A program made the position numbers and the translations under genes. A DNA stretch of 64,000 nt from Ylistrum balloti. Lineage: Eukaryota. The notes under the pieces were generated by a model. That model saw only the letters and a program-made list of their open reading frames with translations, was not told the DNA's origin and did not search any database. Shown here piece after piece: positions 1,394 through 62,699 of this stretch (position 1 is its first letter; every line of letters begins with the position of its first letter). The stretch is taken from NCBI RefSeq assembly GCF_031769215.1, contig NW_026782729.1, positions 62,001-126,000 of the forward strand, in the 5' to 3' direction.

Positions 1394-4300
1394 TCGGAAG
1401 TTGTACATTCCAGTACGACTGCACACTAACAAACTTAACAAACCTGCTTCAGATTAAATTGGTTTTCAACAATAAAGAATAAAACTCATTCAGCATTGCT
1501 AGTTGCCTAACACTTGGCATCGAATCACCTCCATCATTCTTGCATAATGTTTTTCTTTTAATGATTTGAAATTTTTTCAATTATTTGAAACATCTTTTTT
1601 AAAATAAAAAACTTTTTTCCAGGCCTTAACAAATCTTGAAGCAATAAATGATCTGTTTGACATCTTATGTAACACGTTTTGAAACTCATTTAACTGTATT
1701 CTGTTGATATGATACATATCTTACACTTTGTTAAAAAATATTGTTCACAATGTAATAAGTTAGGAAATAAGACTTAGGAGAAAAAAAATCAACACACACT
1801 GAGGAAAATGAAAACAAAACCAGAATTCTACAATATTTAATTTAGCACTCTTTGTATGGGTTTGGTTGTACCATCCTTCTTGGTGATCAAATGGGAATTA
1901 TTGTAAACTTTCATTTCCAAGCAAGAAGTGAAAAATTTAGTAACAATTCTTAAGTTAATCACATAAAGGAGAACTCCCTGTGTGAAAGCAATCAGTGTTA
2001 TCAGTCACATATTTCTAGGTTACAGAACATATGATTGTATAGATATATACCACAAACTCTATATACAAACTTGTACCTAAATGTGATTACATTCACATCA
2101 ATTTCATAACAAATATTCAATAACAATCTTTTTTTCTAATATTTTTTTTATAACTTTTTTGTTTTTCTGTCTAAAAATAACACACTTCAACATAGTTAAC
2201 AAGTAAAAAATAATGTACAAAAGTTTTTGAACAGATTTGCACATATATATATAACTGCATGTTTTCTTTCCAATATATTTCTAACTAGGCTGTGTACCTG
2301 AACTGAATTTCTTTAAATACAACAACAGAATGTACTGCAACTGAAAATGCACTGGATACATATTTAACATATGTATAACAGATGCTTCTTTTGAAGATAG
2401 GGTGGAACATTTGTTGTATTTATGAATTTTAACTATATCAAAAATGAATTACAAACACTCTTTCCATAAATAATCTCAAACATAACTTGTATTACTGACC
2501 ATATTCGATGGAATCATGTTTAAAATTCTATCCTACAGGTCATATGATGGGGCCGAGACCAAGTCCGTCTTTACGTAAGGAGGTCAAAGTTGTCTTCTAT
2601 GTCAACAGTCGGGAAAGTTGTAGATTAGACGAAGATTTAAATGCAGTTGATCATTCTGACTAGCATAATAAGACATAGTAATATCATATTATCTGTGATA
2701 TAACTGTGCAGAATCTGTTCAGAAAATAGTTGCACAAAACAAATGATGAATGAGTTGATACCTGTAAATGGTGAAAGACAACTACAATACCTGACTAACT
2801 CATCATCGTCAATAATAGTGGTGTCTACCTGCATACAGGTCCACCAATATGTACATGCTACACAAGGAATGATAATGGCCATCTCACAGACAGGGAGGAA
2901 TACATATAGGGTCTGGATGAGCAATGGACATGCAAAGGTGGGCGGAGCTCATTGTGTACAAGACTGCATAATGTATGGAGAAAGACACCATTCATACAGT
3001 TATTTACACCACTCATTACAGCCTTGTCACACTCATACATGATTAGTCTACTGCTACACTGTTTTATCATTCTTGCAATCTCTAATTCAAGCTCTCCTAG
3101 TATTTACATATATTTCTAATACTACTTATTTACAAGATCATTTGACCAGGTTCTATATTTCAATAATTAGCAGAACCTGATGTGTTTTACACTACAATAA
3201 CAAATGTGACAAAGGACAGTAACCTCTATTGTCAGACATTTGAGATATGTTTTGATGAAAAGATGTGACAAAGCACAACAAGAAATCTGGACTGGTATCT
3301 GGTATGATACTTTAGAGCAGAAGTGAAACACAGGGGTACATCAAGGAGCATCCCATGTCCCCCTGAATCTCACAAAGTCCGTCCATATATTGACTAGAAG
3401 GGTAGAAATGGGTGGTACCAACGACTTCATTTGCTAAGTCTGAACTTTACATGTAAAACAAAAGGTAGCTGAATTCACATTTATCAAAGCTCGGACGGCA
3501 TCGTAACGCATCAATGTTAAGTAGAAGTAAAACAGACATTAGATGTTTATAAGTACCATATCCATGCATGCATATTTGTTTATATTTGGCATCTAATAAA
3601 CACAGACATTTGAGCAAAGTGCCTTATCTTTTTACACACATTGAACTTGATCCATTGACCTGACACACTAATTTATCCAATTTACCCTCAGAATTTCTCC
3701 AAGCTGATGTTTCAAAATTAAGAATTATTGAAACATTTTCTGCATTACTTTGTTTTAATTTTTTTTTTATATTTTTCCCCCTCTTTTTGTGTCTTTTTTT
3801 TTTTTTTTTTTAAACATATACATTTTTTCTTACATATCATGCTATAATCATAATAGATTTTGTAACATGTCATCCTCTTATTCCTGGAGGCCATAACAAA
3901 GGATATTGATCATGGAAATGCATCTTTCAGACGTGATAATGAAATAATTCATGGAATGACAGTCATATCAGTGCGCTCATTTACTCTAGGCTCCGCCCAC
4001 CTCTCTTGATGCTGCCATTCAAAACATGTTAACCAATGAGATCTGAGTACACAATACAGACTAAAACAACAAGGATATGGAGAGTACAGTAGAAACCTTT
4101 GAGTGTTAATGTACCACACCGCTGATATAACACGACCTACTCTCTGTGTTCTTCCTGGGTATATATATATATAATGTGTATTTTCTATATGACCTGACTG
4201 TGTAAATAAAAAATCTGAAATATAGAGTACGATTTTAAACAGACATATAACTGGCTAGCTACTAAATTATCACAGTGTTATACCTTAACCCCAGCCTCTA

Positions 4301-5776
4301 CTATCACTCCTCCCCCTATATATACTGTACAGGCTATGATACAGCTAGCTGTCTATTGCTGACATCACTAATCTGATATGTGTCCTACTTAATACATCTA
4401 TAGATCTCCTTCATTCATCACAATCAACTCATTTAACATATATATTTCTCTAATTAGTATAATCTTCACCAATATGAAAATTTAATGCAATTTGGTTATT
4501 GTATAAATTCAAATATTTCATTATTCTTTGAGATATTTTTTTCTTAAATTAAAGTACTTAAGCAATTTTTAATGAAAATTAAATTCAATCACATTATTTG
4601 CCACAAAATACACATTTAGCCTTTAACATTTTTTCAATTTTTTTTAAACCAAGACCTCAGACTTCAGGACCTAGAATTATGTATTATGTGTATAGAGAGT
4701 CTAACCAATCTTGAATCACACATGATACTTATACAAAGGGTAACAAGAATGTATTGTATGAACATATATTTACAAAGTTCTGAAGTGACATGGACAATAC
4801 ATCTGTATATTTGATCCTTATGTGATGACTTAATTGAAATACATACAGCGTATTTGAATTTTAGACAGTGAATATATTGTTCTGTCACAATACATCATAT
4901 AAATGCAAATGTAGTGTTAACCAATCAGATTGCTTGTAAATAAGTTAAGATGGAAGACATTCTTATGATACAATGCAGTACTTGATTGGTCCGTTGTACT
5001 AGCGCTGCGAGTGGACGTTAACAATCCTGATATCATGTAGTGCTCGATTGGTCCGTTGTACTAGCGCTGTGAGTGGACGTTAGCATCCATCAGTTGATCA
5101 GCCCACACTGGTGGTGATCTACTTGGTGGGCCTGCAAGATTGTACTGGACAGCATGCAGTCTCCATAGTAATACATAGTCCTGTGGTATCTAGGACGTAC
5201 ACATTCCCACTACGTATCTAGGATATTCCTCCAGCATATAACAAACTGGTATTAATGTTTGAGTACTTTCTACCATGGTAAAATTTTCCCATAGATATAT
5301 CTTTTTCTATATTTATATATATATACATATATATATGTATTCACACATACAAGTCACACATATACTATTTTCCTAAGTCCACATAGTACACTGTGAACAT
5401 GATGACACAGCATCCTCATGTTTGCAGTGGTTGTCTTCAGTTTTGAAAATGAGACAACTATAAAAAATTTGGCTGCATACATTTGGAATCTAGTATGATC
5501 CTTCTAATGTAGACATACTTTTTCTAGCCATCAACATCATTCTCAAAAACTGCGGATCTATATTTTGCATAAACATATCTACATCTCTAACACATAATGT
5601 CTACCATCCTAAGACACGAGGAACTGTGATAAGTCTACAGCGGACGTCTGGGTCTTTGACCCATATTTGCCGAAGAGAGCTCCCACAGTTTGTGCTGATC
5701 TAGGTCCACACAAGCACATAATAAAAATATCACACGCAGACAAAATCTTTCTTCCTCCTAATTTTGTGGTGATTTA
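1370..5776 (-). other. ERR: Probable long 3'UTR of ERR (about 4.4 kb; distal end uncertain)
   Basis: Lies directly downstream of the stop, has no recognisable ORF, and contains U-rich and (UA)n tracts. By eye the first canonical AATAAA on the minus strand is at 1388-1393; several ATTAAA variants come earlier, so a shorter UTR is possible. Confidence 0.45.
4972..5088. repeat. 62-bp-period direct duplication in the putative 3'UTR
   Basis: GATTGGTCCGTTGTACTAGCGCTG(C/T)GAGTGGACGTTA occurs at 4984 and 5046. Confidence 0.9.
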
Positions 5777-6018
5777 TCAAGAATCTGCCTCCAACATTTC
5801 TAAGAAAAGCTTGTGCATCATCACTCGTCCATCCTTTTTCACATCAAACCAGTACTGTTTGGCGAGCAGTTTGATGTGTGTTAGTGGGGGCAGGAGAAGG
5901 TAGAGATGGCCAAGGCGGCGCAGATTTCCAGCATACCGAGACTTCACATAGTCAATCAGGGCATCTTGGAGTTTGTCCTGAAGGTTGCGTACAGCTTCGC
6001 TGTTCTCTATCACGACAT
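5777..6018 (-). CDS. ERR: ERR last coding exon: LBD helices 9-12 with AF-2 and TGA stop (242 nt)
   Basis: Translates (D)VVIENSEAVRNLQDKLQDALIDYVKSRYAGNLRRLGHLYLLLPPLTHIKLLAKQYWFDVKKDGRVMMHKLFLEMLEADS*; MHKLFLEMLEA is the ERR AF-2 helix. Acceptor ttcacag|AT at 6018. Confidence 0.96.
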
Positions 6019-7166
6019 CTGTGAACCAAACATAAAACAATTAATTTCCACACATTTCACAAATTGGTACATAAATAAATAGTAGTAGTAAATAGCAATT
6101 CTTACAAATATAATGTAGAATTAATCCTTAGTGAAAAAAATTCCCTCTGGCATCTGATACAAGCAATTCAAAGGTTCCCTTAATTTGAAAATATAAGTAT
6201 CTATTTTTGAAACCAAATTCCCTTAATAAAGAATTTTTTTGTGTAAATTAATGATCATTTCATATTGAACTTCATAAGAAATTTATCTGAAGTATGGCAT
6301 ATGTTGATAAAAGTAATTTTATACACAAATATTTGAATGTATGCAAATTTCACCTTTTGCTTTTAATTATGAAACAAAAAATAACAACTGGGAAAGTTGG
6401 TGTCAATCTAGAAATTATTTCCCCATTTAAGAAGAGAGTTTATTTCCTCAAAACTTGAGATTGATTCTGTGAGAATATAAGAGAAGATGCCATGGCGAAC
6501 AGCAGAATTTCAACATGACAGGGATTTAGGATACCCAATTACCATACCACACAAACTGAAAGTTTGGACAAGACTTCATAAACCAAAGTAATTCAAAATT
6601 CATTTCTATGAGATGTATTGTAGATAACTTTCTGAGGATTCTGCCAGTGGAAGGTTGACCTATTCATGATAAGCCTTCTGTTTATTACAATCATCTATAT
6701 TTCCTGAAATTATCTTTCATAAAATTTTCTCATACTATTTCCAATACCCATAACTAATCATCATCTTTTGTTTTTCTTTCAGTATGCTTCCGCAGCTAAT
6801 AAGCTAACTGAAGGCTTACTGAGGGCTGCAGAGCTCAATCAAATTCAGATTTAGAACTACCATAAGACTGCAGTAGATGAGTCATTACTGCGTTTCCCTG
6901 CATTACAAATAAATATTGCATGTTAGAATCCATACAGTGCACAGTCATGTAATATTGATACAAGTCAATAGATCTATCTCTCCTGCTCCCAGATAATTAC
7001 AATCTTCAGCACTGCTTAATCACAGCTCAGACAAGACAGTATGAGTATATCTTACCCTGATCAATATCCTTCTTAAAACTTAAGGAATTTAAATGATTCT
7101 GATGCCTTTTTGACCTAGTAATTTGAAAACCAATTTGATCTATGACAGCCTTTGATATGTACATAC

Positions 7167-7439
7167 CTATGTTACATAATGTCATGGCTTTCAGAAGGAG
7201 ATACTCTTCCTTTGTAACTCCCATATTTGTAAATTTTTTGGCGAGTTTGCGGGTGAGGTTATCAAGTTCTGGGCTACACTGGCATTTTTTACACTCATCC
7301 ACTGTCATTTGTAAATCTTCAGCAAAGCGTATGTAGCCAATGTAAGGACAGGATCTAAACACGAGATTCAGACAGAGTATCTCCAACCAGGAGTGCTGTA
7401 GAAGGTTCATCTGGTCACTCAGCGACAAATTGCAGAAAC
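7167..7439 (-). CDS. ERR: ERR exon: LBD helices 4-8 (273 nt)
   Basis: Translates (G)FCNLSLSDQMNLLQHSWLEILCLNLVFRSCPY...KEEYLLLKAMTLCNI(D). Acceptor acacag|GT at 7439, donor ATAG|gtatgt at 7167. The ORF-track tail GMYISK... is intron read-through. Confidence 0.96.
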
Positions 7440-8417
7440 CTGTGTGTAATTATACACAATTAGTGTCTACATACATAGTAATTATGTTATAATTAAAACC
7501 AAATCCAAAAACACATCATGCATTTACTTATTACAATCACAGGGAAACAGCTTAATTATATTTTTTTTTACTGGTGACAAAGCAAAAAATCCCAAAACAT
7601 AATAAACAATAAAACATGTTTTCAAAATGGTAATGGAGTTAAATTACAATGTTCATTTAGGTGAGTGGCATTTTGAAGTCTATCTGCATGTTCTTGTATG
7701 CAAAATATTTATGAAAGATAATATTTTACCACCAAACAAGTGAATAGCGCATAGTTTTACCAAATAATGACTAGCACCAGTAAACTCCTATATATAGGTA
7801 TATATAACGTATTTCTGAGTATATTATCTGTTGTTTTTCTATTTATCTTTTATTAGAAACTCAACTAAGCACAACTTCTGAACATGAACCTCATTAAAAA
7901 TCTGAGTATTGAGTAGATTTGGTCCCTCAACCTATAGTGTTTACATGTTGAAGTTGATATAATATTGAAAGGCTTCTTCTCAATATTTTGATTTTCATGC
8001 AAGATATCATGTAGCTGACAGATAAACACAGGGTTTTGCGAGATACAGGTCGATGAAGATTAAGGGGAAGTTTAACAGTTATCAAAAAGAGATATTTTAT
8101 TTCCTTTTGCAAATGAAGCTGGACGTGTTTGATGTTCAGATGTAAATCTTATGGTTCCATTGTTGTTTACCTTGTTACATCTGAGGATGTGACATCACTT
8201 ACTTGGATTGACTAAGATTAACATGGTGGATGTTGTTGATGACGCAGAAGACGCTTAACTGGTATTATTCTCCTAGCATTTTTTCAGGAGTCTCTGTGTA
8301 AATCTTTCCTATCTTGTCCTAGCTTTATTTTGAGAATGAATCGTGATTCTGTTGGTATGTGGGTATTTTCTTTCTTGGTTGTCTTTATATGGTACATACA
8401 GTCCTAACACTACATAC

Positions 8418-8594
8418 CTGGCACCTGTTTGGCCCAGCTTATAGTAATAACCAATTCTCGGTCAGCTAGATCAGAAAAGGCTGCTATAAAACGCATCTCA
8501 TCATTGACAAGCTCTGGTTCTGGGTTGGCATATAATTTGTCTAACTGTGATTCAATGTTCAGCAACTGTGTCAAAATCTTGTTTTCATGTTGGA
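8418..8594 (-). CDS. ERR: ERR exon: LBD helices 1-3 (177 nt)
   Basis: Translates (F)QHENKILTQLLNIESQLDKLYANPEPELVNDEMRFIAAFSDLADRELVITISWAKQVP(G), with the NR3 signature DLADRELV..WAK..PGF. Acceptor ttacag|TC, donor CCAG|gtatgt. Confidence 0.96.
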
Positions 8595-8804: not shown

Positions 8805-8921
8805 ATTCAAAGCATGCTTTTTTCACCATGGGCAGTATGGGTTGTATGAGTGGCTGACTGAGACTGTCCAAGCTTCTCTTGTATTTTTGTCTCCCACCGC
8901 GCACTCTGTCGAGACGCACAC
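8805..8921 (-). CDS. ERR: ERR exon: C-terminal extension (T/A box) and hinge (117 nt)
   Basis: Translates (G)[38 protein letters not shown]; [15 protein letters not shown] is the diagnostic ERR CTE. Acceptor ttacag|GT, donor GAAT|gtaagt; in frame with both neighbouring exons. Confidence 0.96.
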
Positions 8922-9076
8922 CTGTAATATCAAACACACAATGTTATTTTCATATTTTGAAAAGCCTGTGTTTTATGTAATGTCAGAACTGTTTCTTATT
9001 CTTTGTACAACTGTCTTGCATAGATAGCCAAATTAAATCAAGGAAGCCAAAATTCCTATTTTTTTTAATGAGAGTT

Positions 9077-10570: not shown

Positions 10571-11404
10571 TTTTCTTTTCACTGTTTAATCGAGCTTATC
10601 TTTACAGTTTTCTTTTGTATCCTTACAACACTGTACATACAAAAAAGAATGAAAGCATCCCAGTTGGGTGCAGGGTGTTTTTACCAGAGAATAACCTCTA
10701 TCATCAACTGCTTACTACATTGTGTAATGTTGACATATTACAAGCTAAAAGCAGGTAGTGCTACACTTGAAGTGTTGTTGGGTCAGATTGGTTAACCAGA
10801 CAAGGTTCATTTATACTGATACAAATCACAGCTGTTATCACCTTAATCATCACCAGTATCTTTCCTCACAAAACCAGTGACAAAGAACCTTTAAGACCAG
10901 AGAAAAATTATGAATAAATTATGGAGTCTCAAGGAATTATACTGTTAAGTTTTGCCATTCTGTTGTAAGCGATATGCACACTGGTGAGATAATCAATTTA
11001 TAAAGGGAAAATTCCAGACATTTCAAAGATGTAGAGAATGGCCTGGAAGGTTTTTTTAAAACAGTTTTTAACAAAACAAACATCGCAGACATTAATGGAC
11101 AGCTATCCACCACAGGCTATATACACCTGGCACCAAAACAAACTGTCAGATAATCCACAATCTGCAACAGATCAAATACGTACAGAAAATCTATGATTTG
11201 CTACTGTGCAAACAGTGACACTAATATTGACAACTAACCGATGGTGTGGTAGTCCTCACTGAGAAGGAACAATTATTAGACTACAATCTGCTGTATTATT
11301 CAGTGTTACAGGGTGATATTTGTTGTGATGTAGGTTTTTGTGGTACATTATTGAGAAAGTAGACTTGGTCTTAGTTAGTTGCAGGCAATGAACTACCATC
11401 CCCA

Positions 11405-13715
11405 CTAATACTAGTGAGCAGTAGGTGATAGTCTCTGTCATCCCTGATGGTCCTGATGAGCTGTAGATGATAAACCGTTTTACCCTCAATGGTCCTGATG
11501 AGCTGTAGATGATAAACCGTTTTACCCTCAATGGTCCTGATGAGCTGTAGATGATAAACCGTTTTACCCTCAATGGTCCTGATGAGCTGTAGATGATAGA
11601 CCGTTTTACCCTCAATGGTCCTGATGAGCTGTAGATGATAGACCGTTTTACCCTCAATGGTCCTGATGAGCTGTAGATGATAAACCGTTTTACCCTCAAT
11701 GGTCCTGATGAGCTGTAGATGATAAACCGTTTTACCCTCAATGGTCCTGATGAGCTGTAGATGATAAACCGTTTTACCCTCAATGGTCCTGATGAGCTGT
11801 AGATGATAAACCGTTTTACCCTCAATGGTCCTGATGAGCTGTAGATGATAGACCGTTTTACCCTCAATGGTCCTGATGAGCTGTAGATGATAGACCGTTT
11901 TACCCTCAATGGTCCTGATGAGCTGTAGATGATAGACCGTTTTACCCTCAATGGTCATGATGAGCTGTAGATGATAGACCGTTTTACCCTCAATGGTCCT
12001 GATGAGCTGTAGATGATAGACCGTTTTACCCTCAATGGTCCTGATGAGCTGTAGATGATAAACCGTTTTACCCTCAATGGTCCTGATGAGCTGTAGATGA
12101 TAGACCGTTTTACCCTCAATGGTCCTGATGAGCTGTAGATGATAGACCGTTTTACCCTCAATGGTCCTGATGAGCTGTAGATGATAGACCGTTTTACCCT
12201 CAATGGTCCTGATGAGCTGTAGATGATAAACCGTTTTACCCTCAATGGTCCTGATGAGCTGTAGATGATAGACCGTTTTACCCTCAATGGTCCTGATGAG
12301 CTGTAGATGATAGACCGTTTTACCCTCAATGGTCCTGATGAGCTGTAGATGATAAACCGTTTTACCCTCAATGGTCCTGATGAGCTGTAGATGATAGACC
12401 GTTTTACCCTCAATGGTCCTGATGAGCTGTAGATGATAAACCATTTTACCCTCAATGGTCATGATAAGCTGTAGATGATAGACCGTTTTACCCTCAATGG
12501 TCCTGATGAGCTCTAGATGAGACCACATTATCCTCAATGGTCCTGATGAGCTCTAGATGAGACCACATTATCCTCAATGGTCCTGATGAGCTGTAGATGA
12601 TAGACCGTTTTACCCTCAATGATCCTGATGAGCTCTAGATGAGACCACATTATCCTCAATGGTCCTGATGAGCTCTAGATGAGACCACATTATCCTCAAT
12701 GGTCCTGATGAGCTCTAGATGAGACCGAATTATCCTCAATGGTCCTGATGAGCTCTAGATGAGACCACATTATCCTCAATGGTCCTGATGAGCTCTAGAT
12801 GAGACCACATTATCCTCAATGGTCCTGATGAGCTGTAGATGATAGACCGTTTTACCCTCAATGGTCATGATAAGCTGTAGATGAGACCGAATTATCCTCA
12901 ATGGTCCTGATGAGCTCTAGATGAGACCACATTATCCTCAATGGTCCTGATGAGCTCTAGATGAGACCACATTATCCTCAATGGTCCTGATGAGCTCTAG
13001 ATGAGACCACATTATCCTCAATGGTCCTGATGAGCTCTAGATGAGACCACATTATCCTCAATGGTCCTGGTGAGCTGTAAATGAGACCACATTATCCTCA
13101 ATGGTCCTGATGAGCTCTAGATGAGACCACATTATCCTCAATGGTCCTGATGAGCTCTAGATGAGACCACATTATCCTCAATGGTCCTGATGAGCTCTAG
13201 ATGAGACCACATTATCCTCAATGGTCCTGATGAGCTGTAGATGAGACCACATTATCCTCAATGGTCCTGGTGAGCTGTAAATGAGACCACATTATCCTCA
13301 ATGGTCCTGATGAGCTGTAGATGAGACCACATTATCCTAAATGGTCCTGGTGAGCTGTAGATGAGACCACATTATCCTCAATGGTCCTGGTGAGCTCTAG
13401 ATGAGACCACATTATCCTCAATGGTCCTGATGAGCTCTAGATGAGACCACATTATCCTCAATGGTCCTGATGAGCTGTAGATGAGACCACATTATCCTCA
13501 ATGGTCCTGATGAGCTGTAGATGAGACCACATTATCCTCAATGGTCCTGATGAGACCACATTATCCTCAATGGTCCTGGTGAGCTGTAGATGAGACCACA
13601 TTATCCTCAATGGTCCTGATGAGCTGTAGATGAGACCACATTATCCTCAATGGTCCTGATGAGCTCTAGACGATAGACTCTTATCCTGTATAGTCCTGGT
13701 GAGCAGTTGTTGATG
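11405..13715. repeat. 2.3-kb composite minisatellite: about 25 x 42-bp units followed by about 29 x 40-bp related units
   Basis: 42-mer GGTCCTGATGAGCTGTAGATGATA(A/G)ACCGTTTTACCCTCAAT from ~11447 to ~12500, then 40-mer GGTCCTGATGAGCT(C/G)TAGATGAGACCACATTATCCTCAAT to ~13670. Degenerate units occur at both edges. Confidence 0.98.
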
Positions 13716-31592: not shown

Positions 31593-33237
31593 ACAAGATG
31601 GGAACCTGTCACCAACTCCCACTCATTTCCATAATACATTAGCTTAACATCCTTCATGAGCACTCAGCCAAACAGAAAACAATTTGTTGTCTCCATGGGT
31701 GTGACAGAAAGAATGACTTAATGTCAAAATCTGCATATTTCACTACTGTTACTTGTTCTCAATATTACTTTATTCATAATTTGAAGGACTATTTAATTGA
31801 AAATGTGTTTACTCTCTGGAAGAAACTCATTTTGATGCTAACCTTTCCATAAAAAAAGCACGTTAAAAAGGGAAAAAGAATTTAAACTGTAAATGAAACA
31901 GCTTTATCCTGCCTGGAAATGGGTTCGCAATAAAATCAAACTAGCATCAAATTACAGTAAAAGGTGCTGATCAGTCACATGAAATGTTCATTGCCCAAAA
32001 GACCCCAGGAAACGTATTGTATTGATAACTGGATCACCAGGGATAAGCTCGAGTCTTGTCAGACAGTATCCAGCGAGGAGTCTTGTATAACATTCTCATG
32101 TGAAATATTAGTTTAGGAGAAGCAATATTTTATGTAAATGACAAGGTCCTGAGGTAAATATACTGCTATACCAAAAATAAAATCCCCTCACTTCTCTATA
32201 GATGGATATCAGATATATATTGTACATATGTGTTTTACCTTTAAACCTGGGCATTCATAAAAGGTTAATCGCCGACAAACCTAGAAAGATTTCCTAATCC
32301 ATTACCAAAGTAGCAAATCTGAACACTTGTGATACTTAAAGGCGTCATTTGGATTCTCCTAGTAAAAAATCTCTGATTAATCACTCTTGTTTACAAAGGT
32401 TCACAACCCTACAAACTAACATTACCAAACAAGTTACTGAAATGACCTTTTTAACTTGTTAATCATGGTCGTGGGATATCATTAACCTGAGGTGTATAAC
32501 CCTCTTCATTAAGTTGCTTAAACATCCCGCAAGACAATAACGTCTAGACTTATACTTAAGGGGTTTCTTAATGCATTTTTATACTGACAAATCATGCAAA
32601 TATCTTGCCAAGGAAATCCTAAACAGTGATATAAAGCTTTGCTGTCAGATTAAATGATTCCACCAGACTATCACTAGATATCACAAACATTGCACAACCG
32701 GGCAATTTCTGTTCAAAACTGTTCCTTAGTAAAACAATGAAAAAATAACAGAAAAACCAAATTCCTGACCTAGTCTTCCAATGTATTGTCATGTGTGTTA
32801 TCTATTCACATAAAAAAAGGGTAAATGCTTGCAATAACATTTGGCCATGGGGTCCTTAATCCAATTGCTGGTGACAGATGGAATACACATGGAATGTAAC
32901 TGCGGTCAATGCCATTGGTACAGAGTGATTTTATTAGTACTGTATCTATCCAGTAATAAGTCCACCTATATCAAATCAGTACAATAACAAATGTTATCCA
33001 TTGTCCTGCATTAATACAAACATTCCCTGACTCTGAATAGAAGTTCCCTGGTCTTACTGCAGAGTAAACACGGTAATACCAGGTATGTGCTTTTATATCA
33101 TTGCCTTGGAAAAAGCACACGCAAGATTTCTTGTTGATTGACGATCACTTTGATTTTCAAACAATGTTGCTAAAAAGTTGCAATTTTTACTGAAGCGCGA
33201 AATTAACCGATTTTTGTTAGAATGAAGCTTCACTCAC

Positions 33238-33354
33238 CTTCCCTGAGCATGCCCACTCGTAAACATTTCTGGAAGCGACATGCTTGGCATGCCTTCCTTC
33301 TTCTCTTTGTAATCTCACAGTCTCCATTTGCTGGGCAAGAATACTCTATGTTAC
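33238..33354 (-). CDS. ERR: Estrogen-related receptor (NR3B), second zinc-finger exon of the DNA-binding domain (117 nt; missed by the ORF track)
   Basis: Manual translation of the minus strand gives (G)[38 protein letters not shown](G), the ERR D-box/second C4 finger. Acceptor ttccag|GT at 33354, donor AAG|gtgagt at 33238, phase 1 at both ends. Confidence 0.96.
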
Positions 33355-35734
33355 CTGGAAAAGATAAACAAATTTAACATTAGGTAGACGATACATATTA
33401 CACAAGATATCTTGGAAACAATTCACCATGCTGACAGCATTTTATCTATGACGTAAATGTATCAGCACTTCCTACACAACTAACAATTTTCCAATTGCCT
33501 TTTACATTGACTAAGAGCTATACAAAAGGAATGTGTTTATGTTTTCATATAAATCTCAGTTTAATCAAATGAAATTTGTATCTCCATTGCATGCAAACAC
33601 AATGAAATAAGGAAAAATCAATGCCTATTAAGTTGACTTCACAGCCATTCCCCATGCTTACAAAATCCTTTGTGTTGCTCTGGCAACAGATAAAAGGTTC
33701 TGCTGAATATGGTCTATATGACAACAGAACAGTATGTTTTGAGTGATGAATATTGATATTATATTTTATGAACGACCAATATACATCAGGCAACAATTAT
33801 CTGCTTTTTACTATGTAACTTTATTCCCTCATTGGGCTTTTACAATTTGAAAATAAAAACAATATGGACAAATGATACTGGGTTCTTATATTTACAAATG
33901 TAAAACATTGTTTCATTTAGTTTTGAGGTTGATCCACTACAAGAGGGCTAATCCTTAGCTTCCCACTCATGAATACAATATAATGTAGTTAGTTGTCTGA
34001 TGGTACTAGATCAATAGGGGTTTCAATACTGATACTGTCTGCATCACTATGGCCATATTTAGAGTATGGTCTATAAACAATACAAAGAGGCTCTGTTCTG
34101 TCGTAAAACCAAAAATATCCAATCATAAAATCTCTAAAGCCTCATCCCTCTACTCCGACAGAAAATTGTACCGCTTATTTGACCCTAGAGCTAAAGGAAA
34201 ACAAACATGTCTATGAAAGTGTTATGGTAGATATATATATGTTAAACTTGTTTGTATGGAGAAATCTAGATAGGTCAGCTTCACAATCAAACATCAAAGC
34301 TGTTGTAATGATTCCATTTATATGCAACTAGATAGCTTAAAAAAGATAACACTTTATGTTCATATCCCTGACTGATCATCGACTGTACATTATTGGTATT
34401 TAATATGAAGACATGGCACAGCCAATACCTACCATACAAATCACTATAACTATGGGAGAGGACGGAGAAAGAGAGACAGGGTATTGCTTGTCGCAATAAA
34501 AAAGCCACCGCCTAGACCAGTTTTATTATTGTCAGACTCCAAACTGTCAAATGACAATAGCCTGGAGTAGGATATGTAAGTATGTCTTTACCCACACAGC
34601 CTGAAACTACTGACATTGTGCAAAGTTGCAAATTTTAATCTGTAAATGAAATAAATTTAGCCACGAGAAGATTTAAGGCAAAATTTCAGCACTTGGAAGA
34701 TGTTACCCAAAAATAGTCATAACATTGGAAGATATGTTTACCTAAGTCTTCATTTCAACAGTTTCATACATTAGATATGTAAATGTCACAAGGTTCAGAT
34801 ACTAAAAGGTTCAGTAATAAAGTCAGACACATTCTTGCTTTATATTTCCTCCCGTCAATACTTTTGAAGAAAACGTTGACCATAAAACAATAAAAGAAAA
34901 GAATTTGCGATATAAATCCAATCTTTACTGTGTACACCAAACGAGATAATATATTAAGTAATGCAGTGTTTCTAGTCAAACAAGGCAAACTGAAGTGGAG
35001 CTTCAAGTGGCTAATAAGTAAACTCAACAAGGTATACTCTACACAGTGACACCTTGATGGAAGTCTTATAATGTTATACACATACAGGAACACTTCAAAG
35101 TTCAAGGCCAATTAAGACATACCCCTCAATCATTATCAACTCAGAGCAGACATAATTTGATGGCTAACTACTTGTTTGCATCATATTTTGAACCAGACTG
35201 TTTCAATTTCATGCAAATTTTAAAACTGAAGAATGATATGAAAATGCTAATGATGAGCCTTATGCACTCATTGCACAGAGGCGGCCGGTACACATAAGGC
35301 ATATCATATATCATAGGTGCATTACTGCAATTAAATTTCCTGCTCAGATCATTATAGGATCAGTCAAAAGTATCACAAACAATGCTTAAATCAAACAAAT
35401 TCCTTTGAAGTTCTTTGTTTAACCAATGTTCTCACTAACTTTTCACAAAGTTGATATGTTTCTAATGTAAATGGCGGTATGTTTGTCAGGCCACAGAGTG
35501 ATAAACAGTCAATAAAACAGTGAATTCAAAATCCATGAAATGCTGTTGACCAACTGTTCAAGCAGTCCCAGTAGAGAACATTTGATAAGTTTTATGATAT
35601 GAAACTACAGACCTGTCATTTTATGTATATGGTATAAAAGATCGAACAGTATATAAAACCTAACCTTCTGTATATTGTCATAAGCATTTGTGAAATACTT
35701 GTACCTGACTGTCAGCTAGGTTGGCAATGGTCAT

Positions 35735-40859: not shown

Positions 40860-41890
40860 AACAACACTAAAACCTTCATCTGTCACACCTCACAAAACCC
40901 TCCCCTGTCACACCTCACTAGAACCCACACCTGTCACATCTCACTAAAATCCTCATCTGTCCACATCTCATAAAAACCCTCATCTGTCACACCTCAATAA
41001 TACCCTCACTTCACTAAAACCTTTGTCTGACCTCACAAAACCCTTTTCCGTCACACCTCACTAAAACTTTTGTCTGTATCACCTCACTAAAATCTTTGTC
41101 TGTCTTGCCTCACTAAAGCCCTCATCTGTCTTACCTTACCAAAACCTTAGTCTGTCTAACCTCACTAAAACCTTAGTCTGTCTAACCTCACCAAAACCTT
41201 AGTCTGTCTAACCTCACTAAAACCTTAGTCTGTCTAACCTCACTAAAACCTTAGTCTGTCTAACCTCACTAAAACCTTAGTCTGTCTAACCTCACTAAAA
41301 CCTTAGTCTGTCTAACCTCACTAAAACCTTTGTCTGTCTAACCTCACTAAAACCTTAGTCTGTCTAACCTCACTAAAACCTTAGTCTGTCTAACCTCACT
41401 AAAACCTTAGTCTGTCTAACCTCACTAAAGCCTTAGTCTGTCTAACCTCACTAAAACCTTTGTCTGTCTAACCTCACTAAAACCTTAGTCTGTCTAACCT
41501 CACTAAAACCTTAGTCTGTCTAACCTCACTAAAACCTTAGTCTGTATCACCTCACTAAAACCTTTGTCTGTCTAACCTCACTAAAACCTTAGTCTGTCTA
41601 ACCTCACCAAAACCTTTGTCTGTCTAACCTCACTAAAACCTTTGTCTGTCTAACCTCACTAAAACCTTTGTCTGTCTAACCTCACTAAAACCTTTGTCTG
41701 TCTAACCTCACTAAAACCTTTGTCTGTCACACCAACCTAAAACTTTTGTTGGTTTCACCACACTAACACCCTCATTTGTCATACATCACTAAAACCCTTC
41801 TCTGTCTCCCCTCGCTAATACCTTCGTTTGTCACACCTTATCTGTCACCCACTAATCTTTGTCTGTCACATCATGGTAAAATCTTTTTGT
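40860..41890. repeat. 26-bp minisatellite, about 39 copies, homogeneous core with degenerate flanks
   Basis: Unit CTCACTAAAACCTT(A/T)GTCTGTCTAAC; period 26 (41161 to 41187). Confidence 0.97.
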
Positions 41891-44454
41891 CTGTCAAATC
41901 ACATTTAAAACAGTTATGGCCATGAGAACAAAAAGTATCATCCCTTTCAGATATTATCCAAATGTCTGCATTATTAAGTTAGTTCAGATAGTTATCTGAA
42001 ACAAATATGATAATTAAAAGCATGCAGTCATACTTCATCAATGATAATTTTCCTTTTTCTTACAAAAACTGATTTTAAAGCAAAAATAATGATACAAAAC
42101 CTGACATAACAGAGAGATTTTATGTATCAATTACACACCCACACCCACCCACATAACATTGATTGATATCTAAAAAGATATATATCACTTTGTTCCAGCT
42201 TTATACATCAGTAACGCAAGAAATCTAAATATTTTTTAATAAATATATAGTTTGATACTTGAAAAGTGATTTAAGTTTTTAATTGTATATGTATATATAT
42301 ATATAAACACAAGAATAACCTTTCTATGCACAGCATGTTTCATTGACAATTATCATCTAAACACACTCTTGGCAAGCTGTGACGAATGTGCACTGAAGGA
42401 ATTGGGAACATGAAAGTGTTGTACAGTGCACATGTACTGACTACCGAGAGCTGTAGACTGTTGTATTGATACAGGAGTCCCTCAGCTCCCTTTAGATACA
42501 CTTTGAAACAGAGGTTTGATAGCTAGTGTTTTCTTACAGTAGTGTACTGTTTAAGTACTGTGTGCTAGGGACTTACATGGACAGATAATGTACTGCAAAA
42601 AGTACCTAGATTGTAATAAGTTTAACAGACATTTGTAATTGGATTGCAAAATGAAAGAAGGATGTAAATCATTGTATTATCATTGAAGTGAAACAATAAA
42701 AGAGTAGAGAATTACAGCTAAATGTCATCATTCCCTTTGAGACAGCAAGTACAAGAAAATGAAGAATATGGTTTTGTATGCTGATTACACTGAAAGCAAG
42801 TACAGGAGAGTTATTGTAAATTTAAATCACTCAACTAAACCAGAGAGGGAGAGCTGACATGGGATCCAAACTACTGCCATTTCAGTCTTCCCTTAATGTG
42901 ACAGTATGAGCAGTAAGACATATAATCCAAACAGACTAACATTAACACTGTTTGTATTGAATCAAGAATACAGAAGAAAATACAGAAATGTCATTCAAAA
43001 CAGCAAAAATTAAACAAATGGCATCTGCTTCGAGTACACGAAGTTCATGTTAAAAATCCATTTCATTAAGGAAATTTGATTTCTTTTAGATTAATGAAAA
43101 TCCCCAGACTGCTGTTGAAGCCCTCAATATGTCCGTCATTTGATAGAAAGCTCCAGAATGTTGCTCTATGAACTTTTCTATTCCAGGATGGTGCCAGCAA
43201 CTTGATGGTGCCTTAATAACCTACATTGAAGTCTCATATCACTCACATTTACTGACCAGCTGATTGTATTAACTAGAAATGTCTCTCATGTTTATGCTCA
43301 TTCTGGCATTAAACTCTTTTTATGTAAATTGTCTTTATTTCACAAGCTGAAATTTAATTAAACTACAACGTATGATATTTTTAGCCATAAAGAGATCTGT
43401 CTATTGGGGCTGCATTATCTAATAACGAATCTGTATTCAAGATATTTATCATATGGCTTGTACTGCTGATGTAATCCATCACTGCAGCATAGAGCTTAAG
43501 CTGAACTCTGACACCCACTCAACTTTCTTACTATTATATAAATTTTCTAAGATGTTGAAAATACAGCAATTATTCAATGAAATTGTTAAGATGTTGAGGA
43601 TTTTTCCATAATTTAGGAATGAAATTGACTATACGAATAGGGAAAACAGCCGAAATCATTGATATTTGTGTAATGACTTCCCAGAATTGTAAAGTCCATT
43701 TATAAACCTATAATTGAGTGCTGATGGTGATGTCATTACAATGGAACTATCAAGTGTTCAACACTGGAGACAGCTAACCTATACTGACTGGAAAGTATCG
43801 GTTTATTATCAAAACCAACATAAACTTCTGAACAGAGCCCATAACAATCATCATATGCTAACATATATTGATTTATCTGTATCCTGCTCTGAATTCCCTT
43901 AATCTATTCAAGTGAAAATATCTTCAAAGAGTTCTTTAAGTTTTAAAGATAATCAGGTTTTGATGAAGAATGCCCAATAGATTCACTGATGATACACTAT
44001 CATCTCCTGAAACACAGCTCCTTAACTCTAAGCCTTCCTTCATTAATGAAAATAATCATAGGCATGATTAGCATAACTGATTGTTTTATCACTAAGTAAT
44101 ATGTCTATCATTAGGTGCAGTTAGATAACAAATACAAGGGTGGGGCATCAGTGGCCCATTACACTGTTATTGTGTAAAAAGTTAGACCTATAGAATACTG
44201 ATATCATCCCACACTTATATTATAGGAGTTTCCTTCAACAGGATATTCTTCCACTGTAGGTTTTTTTATAGTAACATGTGTTTGTGAGGAAATCCTGAAG
44301 AATTGTCTATACACCTGAATCACATTATATACTGATATTGCCTTCAGAGATAAAAGGCCTTAATAGAAAAACAAACTCTGTGAATTACTGCTCCAAACAA
44401 ACCAGACAGTAAATCCCAGAAATACAAGCCATGTAGGCAATATTTTAGGACATG

Positions 44455-44627
44455 GTTACGTAACAGTGGATCACCAAACGAAACTGTATGAAATGTAATT
44501 GTGACGCAAACATTACAAAAACTATTGAGAAGTGTAATATAGACAAGCTGCTCCACTGAGCAGAGATTACCTTCAATCTGTCCACGTGGTAGGTACACGT
44601 GGTGAAAACACATCAAGTGTGACGTCA
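44455..44627. promoter_or_regulatory. Candidate intronic circadian/cAMP-type enhancer: D-box, tandem E-boxes and CRE
   Basis: GTTACGTAAC 44455-64; TGACGCAA 44502-09; CACGTG 44583-88 and 44596-601; TGACGTCA 44620-27. All are CpG-containing motifs in a CpG-poor background. Function is inferred. Confidence 0.5.
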
Positions 44628-47600
44628 GTAGCACAATAAATCAACTTCAGCCATCTTTTTATTACAACTGCTGAAGTTTACGTCCATTGTAGGATATAAA
44701 ATATACCTTCAAACCGTGCAGGTTTATATCAACAAACTGTTTTCTTTTCATAATGAATGAGCAGTATCTTTCTTATAGAACTTCTATCATTGAATCAAAT
44801 GACTCCCATTATTAATTATGATACAAAATTGCAAATGATCTTATACAAACCTTTCCTGCAGCCAGGTCATCTAACGACAACTCGATGTGCATGTTATTTG
44901 ATTGGAAACTTTCGACAATGAATACAAATCAGCAATGAAGGAAAAGATTAATGGTTGTTCAACAGGAAGAAAATCAACGTGCTCACATTACGGGATGAAG
45001 TGATTTGCATGCAGACATAAAAGAAATTGACATCTTACATGTTTTAACAGCCATCTTATGTTGCAATTTGGCATTAAATTGTCTTTCTTCTTCCATAAAT
45101 AACATATCAATGAAAAAAAAAAAAAGAAACGAAAAAAAAAAACAAAAAAATACATGTTGTAGTCAATAATTGAGCATTCTAAATCTGGATACAAGGCATC
45201 AGAGACATGGATTTAAGACTGCCACAAGAAGGCTGGTAATTTAGGAAGCAGGTACTTTGCGAACATCCTCCTACCGGACATGTTGGAACCGATGGTTCTG
45301 GACATCTCTAATTGTGTAACATCATTAAGGCAGTCGAAAGAAATGCGTTTTCAGAGTCTGTAATGTTGAACACATGTAAACCAATTCTTATTATAGTTTA
45401 ATTTCACAGACAAATCTTTCTGAGCGATATTTGTTTTTTTGGTTTTTTTTAATGCAGCTTTAGAAAGAAATTCAATTCTTACATACAGAGAATTGATTCC
45501 AAATACCAACGCTAGCACAAGGAGGCATTCAGACAAAACGAATGCTCTTTTGTGAATGTTCCACAATAAATGTGAACCTGCTGAGGCATACTGTTGTCTA
45601 CTGCTAAGATGTCTAATGTAGAAAAAGCATTTTTTTTTTCATGCCTACAACTTGGATAGAACTCAAGACTATAGCCTACTGTTTACCTAATGGTCTTGCC
45701 TAACCTATCTTACATAAATGCAAACTACATTGGAAAACAGAAAATGGCAAATGTAGATAAGGCACATTCCGTCCGAATTTCTTAAACCTATAACAGCTAA
45801 GTTGTCACGAGTACCTTATTTCATCATGACAACACCACTACACTGCAGTATAACATGTTATTTACCATTTCAACAAGTCAAGTTTTCAAGTAGGAACTGA
45901 CTGAAAACACATGGTATACTTATAAGTGTAGGTGTGAACAACAGAGCACATTTCATGTAAGGACTACTACCCTGAGAGTCTAGATTTCATGTTTATCACT
46001 AAATCTCATTACTTAGACTGTGGTTAATAAAGTCTAATGACCGCAGTCATATCTAAGCTTCCATAGCTGTTTTTCAAGACTGCCTTCACAATCATTCCTG
46101 TGAAACATGCAAGCTCAGTCTATTATAAAGAAGGATTAAGACACGAGTCTTTAAATTAACCAGCAATGTCTGACGCAATTGTCTTAAGCACTACTTCTAA
46201 TCCATTAATCTGTTCAGGTCATTGGGTCTCCGTATTTTGTATGGAGCTTTACCAGTGGCGTGATACGACATAGCTGTACTGAACTTTTGAGACAATAAAT
46301 CTTTCAGTTTTCCAAAAATTTGTATTACTCAGCTGGCCTTGACATGAAATAGTACACAAGGTTTGTGCCATTGTTGCCATCTGCCAATTGTTATAGACAA
46401 AAGAGTAACTTATCAGGCATTTAAACACTGACGAAGATCACAAGGCTAGTGCTAACTTGTTATACACTGACTATTGGCATTTAAACATGAATATGATTTT
46501 GCACAGTCAGTAATATTTCAGAATGCAGAATGGTTAAAACAGGGTATCTCAATGAATGTAGGTCTTGTATGACGTATATTGGTTTTGTACTTGTGGGGTC
46601 ATTGTATACGCTTCACTGCTCCCATATTCACCTGTGGTGGAAAGGACAGGTAGTATGAAACACTCGCTTAAAAAATATATTCTTTGTGTTTTCATTTAAT
46701 GTATGCTATAAACAGTTTCCATGGACACTCTAACGAATAATATGATATATGTAAATTTTGTCTCTGTAAAAAAGTAATATGATCTACAGTAATTTTCAAA
46801 AAATATAGTTAAAAAAATTTGTATATAACGAAAAAGGAAAACAATCATCTATCAAATATCTACTTGCAAAGCCAGCCAGTGACAACAAAGTCACCAACTT
46901 CTTCTTTAAAAAAAGAAATTAAACAATACATAACACTGCATGAATCTTATAGTACTCACTACACTAACAGGTGTGTCACATATTTCTGCAATAATCTAAT
47001 TGAAAAATTTCAATCTCTGCTTACACAAATTTCTTACATATATAAATATATATAAAGAAAAAAAACAGAGAAAAAAGAAAGGTAAGTGTTCAGTATGTCA
47101 AGGCTGCCTAACAAGACCAAGTCATTCTTGGCCTCTTCAGGGTTTCTTTTCTACAGCCTATAAACAAATTCTCCAAGGAAGTTTGGCAAAAACACAATAC
47201 AAACCACCAGGGATTCCACCCATTACAACATAACTGATGTATATACACATATTTCTGCTGTAATCAGATTTAACGTTTTTTGCTTTGCCCTGAAATCTAT
47301 TCACCATGTTTATGTACAATATACCTAGGGGGAACATCAATACTCATTGTATACCGATTTTCCATTCAATAAGTCTCTAAAACATGAATCCCTTCAAATA
47401 ATAAATTTTTATTTTATTAGTAATTGAATGCTTTATGTGTGCAATAACAATTATCTTTTTATTGTTTTGAACCATAATTAAACTTCAGCAAAATGAAATC
47501 TCTGCATTCTTAATATCATTTTCATTTTGATGTGAATTTTTCTATGTATGACTTGCACTGAAAATTAAATTCAAGTAAACCACTTAATTATATTCTGAAG

Positions 47601-61915: not shown

Positions 61916-62699
61916 CTCTTAAATATGGCATCCCCTTCTTCTTAGTGTAATGACATGTACAACTCAAACCTTTATCATAATGCATTGTATCTTAAGAACA
62001 AATTAACAAATGCTATCACTGACATCTTGTGACCTAACAATGAGGTAAAACAGAAAGCTGTAAAGGTCTGGTACCATACTTGTTTCCAAAACCTCATACA
62101 TTCCAGTTACAATCCAATGTAACCTTTTCGGAGGAGTCATGCCATGCTTCCAGCACGGGCATTATCTAATCATGCCTGTACATGCAATGCATGGGTATCT
62201 TCAAAAGGATAATTAATTTTGTACAACTGAATCAATGCCGAAAAGAAAGAGCTCTCATAAATATCTGATATTTACGTGACAGTGAGACTTCCAGGACCAA
62301 ACAGCTCCTGGACCAATCGAACAGCTGGCCAAGTCAGCAATGAGTGCTACTTCTTTCCCTGATTTAATTAGCTTCAGATTTGCCCTCAATACATAGAACA
62401 AGCTCACTTACAGTGAGAAAGGTGTCAAATAGTGCCTTTAAACCTTTTCCACTGGCATTGATCAAAAGTGAGAGTTTGTAGAATAAAACAATCCAATGTC
62501 CCAATGGACACCATGTATTAAGTACTCCCTTGAGCACAGTGATTGCCTGATACATACTAAATGCAAAAGGATTATTCTCTTTAAAGAAGCAGATTAACAC
62601 AAGATAGACACTTCCACTAAATCTAATGCTATGAGTCTGGCACTATTACAGTTAATTGTGCACTGATTGAGATTACAACTTCATCACATGTATAAATTC

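Follow-up and report, generated by a model that had tools for sequence, protein, structure and literature searches.

Within 173 bp of a long intron in a scallop estrogen-related receptor (ERR) gene lie a perfect palindromic D-box, a tandem pair of canonical E-boxes and a full CRE, and this combination raises the question of whether the element ties ERR to a circadian or tidal clock. The DNA analysed here, which we refer to as the window, is a stretch of 64 kb. Its preliminary description took the cluster to be a clock- and cAMP-driven enhancer of ERR, a proposal that we find to be supported in part: host gene, intronic position and CRE are borne out, the clock module is not. A plausible reading of the sequence is that the cluster is an ordinary candidate CREB-type intronic enhancer.

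The motif cluster as observed is confirmed to be real, and its anatomy, orthology, pattern of conservation, polymorphism and rarity are all directly observed. Every motif is exactly where it had been reported (Table 1), and the counts previously made by eye are right: CACGTG occurs three times in the 64-kb window, outside the cluster only at 54869, and the CRE palindrome TGACGTCA just once. The two E-boxes of the cluster read CACGTG-GTAGGTA-CACGTG in the window assembly, and thus comprise a canonical site with a second E-box at a distance within the 6-7 nt range. D-boxes are sites for PAR-bZIP and E4BP4-NFIL3 proteins (VRI and PDP1 in insects), and their consensus RTTAYGTAAY has seven strand matches in the window, amongst which GTTACGTAAC is the only one that contains a CpG.

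Table 1. Positions of the ERR exons, the motifs of the cluster and the surrounding elements, in window coordinates unless a contig is named.
Feature	Position	Strand	Remarks
ERR first coding exon	contig C872:133345-133692 (~71.3 kb in window coordinates, outside the window)		start codon, N-terminal domain, first finger
ERR second zinc finger coding exon, aa 113-155	33236-33364	-	cluster ~11.1 kb upstream in gene orientation
ERR hinge and ligand-binding-domain exons	8806-8922, 8413-8592, 7144-7443, 5780-6019 (including stop codon)	-	tblastn, Pfam PF00104
GGGTGGGGC box	44138-44146		near cluster
CpG-retaining 1.3-kb patch	44251-45550	.	CpG o/e 0.57, the window maximum, vs 0.25 overall
D-box-like palindrome GTTACGTAAC	44455-44464	.	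perfect fit to RTTAYGTAAY
TGACGCAA, CRE/C-EBP-like hybrid	44502-44509	.	flanks conserved, CpG not
First copy of 13-bp tandem duplication, GTCCACGTGGTAG	44580-44592	.	E-box 37 nt upstream of CRE; direct repeat D3, spacing 13
First E-box CACGTG	44583-44588		inside first 13-bp copy
Second copy of 13-bp tandem duplication, GTACACGTGGTGA	44593-44605	.	E-box 24 nt upstream of CRE; positional orthologue of conserved E-box
Second E-box CACGTG	44596-44601		inside second 13-bp copy; spacer to first 7 nt, GTAGGTA
Alignable conserved block around and downstream of CRE	44593-44698	.	BLAST identity 78.6-80% to L033, L038, L034
Full palindromic CRE TGACGTCA(G)	44620-44628	.	palindrome itself 44620-44627
AACGTG (minus strand CACGTT)	44976-44981		near cluster

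The host gene had been named as a molluscan ERR, and this assignment is borne out: it is the ERR (NR3B) of a pectinid scallop, encoded on the minus strand. The exon for the first zinc finger carries, together with the start codon, the ERR-type P-box CEACKAFF; the exon for the second finger is most similar to ERR gamma, alpha and beta (E = 8e-20 to 7e-19, against 9e-12 for ER); and the best PDB match of the ligand-binding-domain exon is ERR gamma. The gene accordingly combines a C4 zinc-finger DNA-binding domain bearing a CEACKA P-box with an ERR-like second finger and an ERR-like ligand-binding domain. The peptides of the ERR exons, which were searched singly and not as a joined spliced model, are 93-100% identical to the proteins "estrogen-related receptor gamma-like" of Pecten maximus, Ylistrum balloti and Mizuhopecten yessoensis, the full-length proteins being database entries. 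An intron of ~38 kb separates the two zinc-finger exons and contains the cluster, at a distance of 26.7 kb from exon 1 and 11.1 kb from exon 2. The cluster is both intronic and single-copy, in agreement with the unique intron of the preliminary description.

Other identities for the DNA at the cluster were considered and rejected. A coding exon was set aside on the grounds that the 96-aa ORF running across the cluster belongs to no Pfam family; a protein word search found no relative of this ORF but also missed the ORF itself, which leaves little weight to its empty outcome. A non-coding RNA was rejected because Rfam returned nothing, either on 42-47 kb at a permissive threshold or on the whole window at the gathering threshold, and a nested gene nearby because none of the ten ORFs between 38 and 54 kb has a Pfam match. 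Two minisatellites lie elsewhere in the window. One, at 11447-13000+, is built from at least 37 copies of a 42-bp unit with 95% match and gives rise to a 388-aa ORF at 11371-12537 (minus strand) and to spurious low-complexity Pfam matches. The other, at 40865-41838, is C-rich, with ~31 copies of a 26/52-bp unit, and is the cause of a GC skew of -0.56.

The informativeness of any conservation at the cluster depends on how well the surrounding locus can be aligned. For comparison with the window, complete ERR genes were fetched via the annotated proteins of P. maximus (L033), Y. balloti (L034) and M. yessoensis (L038). All three are colinear with the window, and 21-29 kb of its 64 kb can be aligned at ~77% identity, so that the comparison of conservation is informative; it shows the window locus as what appears, from its sequence, to be a fourth genus-level lineage beside the three fetched loci. 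In the more distant Ostrea edulis, Tegillarca granosa and Mytilus coruscus only the ERR exons align and nothing non-coding does, and the absence of the block from these loci is uninformative.

The motifs of the cluster differ sharply in their conservation across the four scallops. All four pectinid genera have the CRE unchanged, as TGACGTCAG. The E-box 24 nt upstream of it is CACGTG in P. maximus, M. yessoensis and the window (where it is the second copy) and TATGTG in Y. balloti, giving a single E-box near the CRE in the first two species and none in Y. balloti. The three other scallops have nothing that corresponds to the window's other E-box, 37 nt upstream of the CRE, and the tandem is neither kept in the relatives nor fixed within the species. 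In alignment A1 the D-box position is occupied by GTTGCATAAC in P. maximus, GTTGAATAGC in M. yessoensis and GAGGCATAAC in Y. balloti, and the BLAST chain leaves it unaligned in two species and shows a different sequence in the third; the perfect site is present only in the lineage of the window. The TGACGCAA site is replaced by TGACACAA, TGACTCAA and TGATACAA within an otherwise conserved block, the following CAAACATTACAAAAA being largely conserved, and its CpG is specific to the window's lineage. Downstream of the CRE, the strings TAAATCAAC, TTTATT.CAA and GAAGTTTAC are invariant in the four. The conservation in relatives on which the preliminary description had staked its reading thus extends to the CRE and, in three of the four genera, to the E-box, and fails for the D-box, the second E-box and the 7-bp spacing, the tandem being confined to the window's lineage, where it is a 13-bp duplication.

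How much weight this conservation can bear is set by its surroundings. Long invariant runs are common at this locus because 62% of aligned positions are invariant across the four loci, and the best 80-bp window of the cluster, with 38 of 80 positions invariant, is equalled or beaten by 24% of all windows and by 65% of those that contain alignment. The conservation of the cluster block is therefore no better than average for the alignable intron of the ERR locus. The CpG of the CRE is one of only 22 among 178 aligned non-coding CpGs (12%) that are kept four-way, against 43% of all dinucleotides. Non-coding CpG-containing 8-mers that are invariant in the manner of the CRE make up 1.5% of all and 4.1% of aligned ones, and the resulting empirical p of 0.015-0.04 covers one motif of five that were chosen post hoc. 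Overall, the conservation signal at the cluster is modest.

The CRE lies within the part of the window that has best retained its CpGs (Table 1). The 750 bp preceding this patch contain almost no CpG. All of its first seven CpGs are in ACG and five of the seven in ACGT, a context that accounts for 12% of CpGs window-wide. The orthologous 1.3-kb patches have a CpG o/e of 0.47-0.59 against a locus mean of 0.34-0.35, which places them within the top 7-17% of windows per locus.

The tandem arrangement of the E-boxes has a simple origin. The two sites are copies of a 13-bp tandem duplication, GTCCACGTGGT(AG) / GTACACGTGGT(GA), that is specific to the window's lineage, and their 7-nt spacing follows from the duplicated unit being 13 bp long. 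Nor is the pair uniform in other sequencing data. The region is covered by five DNA data sets and by zero RNA runs, and variation was compared over 41600-47599 in four DNA runs (X1, X2, X3 and X5) from two studies with two organism labels. At 44599 the window has G and all four runs have A, which alters the CpG of the second E-box and converts it to CACATG. A further substitution is found at 44634, seven bases past the CRE. These four runs agree with the window at the D-box, at TGACGCAA, at the first E-box and at the CRE. The runs differ from the window by ~1 position per 100 bp, and the cluster has one difference in its 173 bp; since this matches the surrounding density, variation in the cluster is not visibly reduced. 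The DNA runs also contain one extra 25-bp unit after 41710 in the C-rich minisatellite, and the copy number of the 40865-41838 array is therefore polymorphic.

The chance of meeting such a cluster was estimated by simulation and by searching the whole genome, all of the chance figures being qualified by the post hoc choice of the cluster. In a first-order Markov model with the composition of the window, the full cluster was found in none of 2000 window-sized sequences, a tandem E-box at 6-7 nt in one, and any E-box together with a CRE within 173 bp in 14. When the model was given the composition of the local 1.3-kb patch, 200,000 patch-sized sequences yielded no full cluster, 97 pairings of E-box and CRE and eight tandems. 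In the whole genome, four sites combine a tandem E-box (6-7 nt) with TGACGTCA no more than 30 nt further on, against none for the reversed control; besides the cluster, these are a copy of an interspersed repeat, a site in a minisatellite and a third on contig C556, all of them inspected as possible markers of clock genes. Tandem E-boxes at 6-7 nt number 248 across the genome against 45 for the reversed control (~5-fold), an excess that arises largely through repeats, and E-box/CRE pairs within 5-40 nt number ~1200 against ~125 (~10-fold). The configuration of the cluster is thus rare, but real genomes build such arrangements mainly through repeated or duplicated DNA.

From this standpoint it has to be asked whether the cluster is itself a degraded copy of an interspersed repeat carrying an E-box, TGAAAACA and a CRE, an explanation to which we assign very little probability. 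Such a family exists: it has at least 40 copies, carries CACGT(G/T)CTGAAAACA...TGACGTCA and is 71-80% identical to the 45 nt at 44583-44627, and the cluster is the best match of the family profile in the window. This match is, however, not significant (E = 0.23, 3.8 bits) and is confined to the motifs, ending with them. The preliminary description had pointed to a multi-copy transposon as a threat to its reading; the genome search, with a 501-bp query (44300-44800) against 648 Mb, gave one copy, the query itself. The three other loci are moreover orthologous and colinear, with a sequence here (GTAAGAACA..TCAGTG) that is unlike the repeat, and orthology of the locus in three genera makes a recent insertion unlikely. 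On the basis of the single genomic match, the weak profile score and this orthology, a copy of a transposon or interspersed repeat was rejected as the identity of the cluster. The members of the repeat family (for example L002:916-1250, at G000:C40:607.6 kb, together with L004, L008, L010 and L012) are up to ~650 bp long and 67-85% identical to one another. They contain one or more E-boxes, a full CRE and the ETS-like string CCGGAAGTG, and are the source of part of the genome's E-box/CRE pairs. A minisatellite at G000:C207:321.3-321.6 kb (L031:1-400) has a unit of ~60-70 bp with TAATGCACGTGTGTGACGTCAG and so presents an E-box plus CRE in tandem.

In its original form, the circadian reading holds that a PAR-bZIP protein at the D-box, CLOCK:BMAL1 at an E1-E2 element and CREB at the CRE together couple ERR to a circadian or tidal rhythm, a coupling that, if it exists, would be lineage-recent. 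The three motif classes do lie within 173 bp of the window assembly, their combination is unique in the genome, and the D-box, first E-box and CRE are free of variants in the four DNA runs. In mouse E1-E2 elements, spacers of 6-7 nt allow cooperative binding of CLOCK:BMAL1 and stronger transactivation (Rey et al. 2011, PMC3043000), and the two E-boxes of the scallop window assembly, with their 7-nt spacer, resemble these elements. The scallop tandem differs from them in being a lineage-specific 13-bp duplication that is absent from three related genera and polymorphic, with one E-box reading CACATG in all four DNA runs, which come from two studies. Both the D-box and the tandem arrangement are missing in P. 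maximus, M. yessoensis and Y. balloti, so that GTTACGTAAC, for all its likeness to a PAR-bZIP D-box, is at most a recent gain from sites such as GTTGCATAAC and its variants. The flanking bases point in the same direction. CLOCK:BMAL1 prefers an A on the 3' flank of the E-box, and the flanks CCACGTGG and ACACGTGG do not have it; they suit MYC/MAX-type sites at least equally. The circadian reading, which leans on spacing rules for E1-E2 elements established in mouse, is weakened by the youth of its diagnostic parts, by the origin of one of them in a duplication and by the polymorphism of one E-box, and as a description of the cluster it is not supported; we consider it improbable. Clock input at the cluster is possible via one E-box, since a single E-box is still able to recruit CLOCK:BMAL1 in mouse (PMC3043000), but it is not indicated. 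A variant of the idea holds that an ancestral enhancer of ERR made up of CRE and E-box was elaborated in one lineage into a new circadian or tidal coupling of this metabolic nuclear receptor, two substitutions producing the perfect D-box and the 13-bp duplication the E1-E2 pair at 7 nt. This too seems distinctly improbable. Were such a clock-type elaboration true, the G/A difference at 44599 would constitute a natural allele series.

The explanation that we tentatively place first, although it falls somewhat short of an even chance, is that the cluster is an intronic cis-regulatory module for CREB/ATF-type bZIP factors with an old core of CRE and E-box. This core would consist of the full palindromic CRE TGACGTCA, the CACGTG 24 nt upstream and a few conserved downstream blocks. 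The CRE would be read by CREB/ATF-type bZIP factors, and the neighbouring E-box would be bound by a bHLH-ZIP factor, for which USF, MYC/MAX, MITF/TFE and CLOCK:BMAL1 are candidates that cannot be told apart from the sequence. The module would thereby link the transcription of ERR to cAMP/Ca2+ or stress signalling, in the manner of mammalian ERR gamma under CREB/CRTC2. The features that give the cluster its circadian look, namely the perfect D-box, the 7-nt spaced second E-box and the CpG of TGACGCAA, are recent additions in the window's lineage, made by point changes and by the 13-bp tandem duplication, and are superfluous for explaining the conserved part. Both factor binding and enhancer activity are what we infer here. 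Of the clock- and cAMP-driven enhancer originally proposed, it is the cAMP/CRE part that gains support, because TGACGTCA is invariant in four genera whilst only 12% of non-coding CpGs are so kept; the clock part does not stand.

Two known systems offer likenesses to the CREB/ATF-type module. Activity-regulated promoters and enhancers pair a USF-type E-box with a CRE, BDNF promoter IV being an example, and the conserved core in scallops likewise has one CACGTG ~15-19 nt from a full CRE; the analogy is one of architecture only, no homology having been found. In the account of a review (PMC7453979, citing Kim et al. 2012), the expression of ERR gamma in mouse liver rises with cAMP in a CREB/CRTC2-dependent manner. 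Mammalian ERR gamma (ESRRG) shares with the scallop locus the presence of a canonical CRE in an ERR-family gene, but the mammalian element is in a promoter and is known experimentally, whereas the scallop CRE is deep intronic and is recognised from sequence and conservation only.

Against the CREB/ATF-type module must be set the doubtful but serious possibility that the cluster is functionless, the product of slow intron divergence, of a less methylated patch that keeps its CpGs, of a chance 13-bp slippage and of a post hoc pick from many windows. Much is consistent with this: the conservation of the block is average for the locus, only two of the five motifs extend beyond the window's lineage, the tandem E-box arose by duplication and is polymorphic, two of the three other sites with a tandem E-box and CRE are an interspersed repeat and a minisatellite, and E-box/CRE pairs are found ~1200 times genome-wide. 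Counting against it are the retention of the CRE's CpG in four genera where 88% of aligned CpGs were not kept, the raised CpG o/e at the orthologous place in all four species, the enrichment of ACGT cores even among local CpGs (5/7 against 12%) and the occurrence of the full cluster in none of the 200,000 simulations of patch composition. A further alternative, that the CRE drives the promoter of an unannotated intronic or antisense transcript rather than an enhancer of ERR, would also account for a CRE and E-box within a CpG-retaining patch, which is a typical promoter architecture, for the conserved T-rich TTTATTACAA ~31 nt downstream of the CRE, and for the ~10-fold excess of E-box/CRE pairs over the reversed control, as expected if many of these lie at promoters. 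Yet zero RNA runs contain the region, the ORFs within ~10 kb have no Pfam family, Rfam gives no match, neither the TATAAAA at 44694 nor the YY1-like GCCATCTT motifs are conserved, and ERR is the only gene called in the three annotated orthologous loci; we regard such a promoter as having a slim probability. A string on the plus strand that resembles a splice donor, TACAGGTAAT(G/C)AAATAC, is common to the three other scallops at ~44720 (A1 columns 452-470), ~90 nt downstream of the CRE, where the window reads GCAGGTTTAT and the alignment is weak. This string may be a hint of a short first exon in antisense orientation.

Should the conserved CRE act as the CREB/ATF-type module predicts, the cAMP/CREB control of ERR described for mammalian liver would apply in a bivalve too, and studies of metabolic regulation in scallops would gain a defined intronic element. 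The locus also carries a caution, in that the parts that catch the eye, namely the perfect D-box and the tandem E-box with its exact spacing, are the youngest and least constrained, the tandem having come from a slippage duplication. At present the cluster is a candidate enhancer at the level of sequence; several such candidates are to be expected in any large intron, and far better conserved blocks share this one.

The best conserved non-coding block of the window, at 62207-62283, belongs to the ERR intron that also houses the cluster and is ~9 kb away from exon 1. Here 77 of 80 positions (62209-62288) are invariant across the four loci, with runs of 33 and 42 identical bases, and both TAATTAAT and TTACGTGAC are present; as an enhancer candidate this block is much stronger than the motif cluster. 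The region at 3983-5757, downstream of the ERR stop codon and presumably 3' UTR, is also among the most conserved parts of the locus, and invariant runs of 52 and 56 bases are found at 5698-5821. CpGs conserved four-way occur in several other bZIP-like sites, namely AGACGTCAC (56125), ATTGCGTAAT (52819; 9/10 match to the D-box), GGCGTCAT (32343), AACGTC (32541) and AACGTG (21750). ACGT accounts for five of the 22 four-way conserved CpGs against 12% overall, an enrichment that is not significant as counted, and several CRE/PAR-like sites may have been conserved at the ERR locus.
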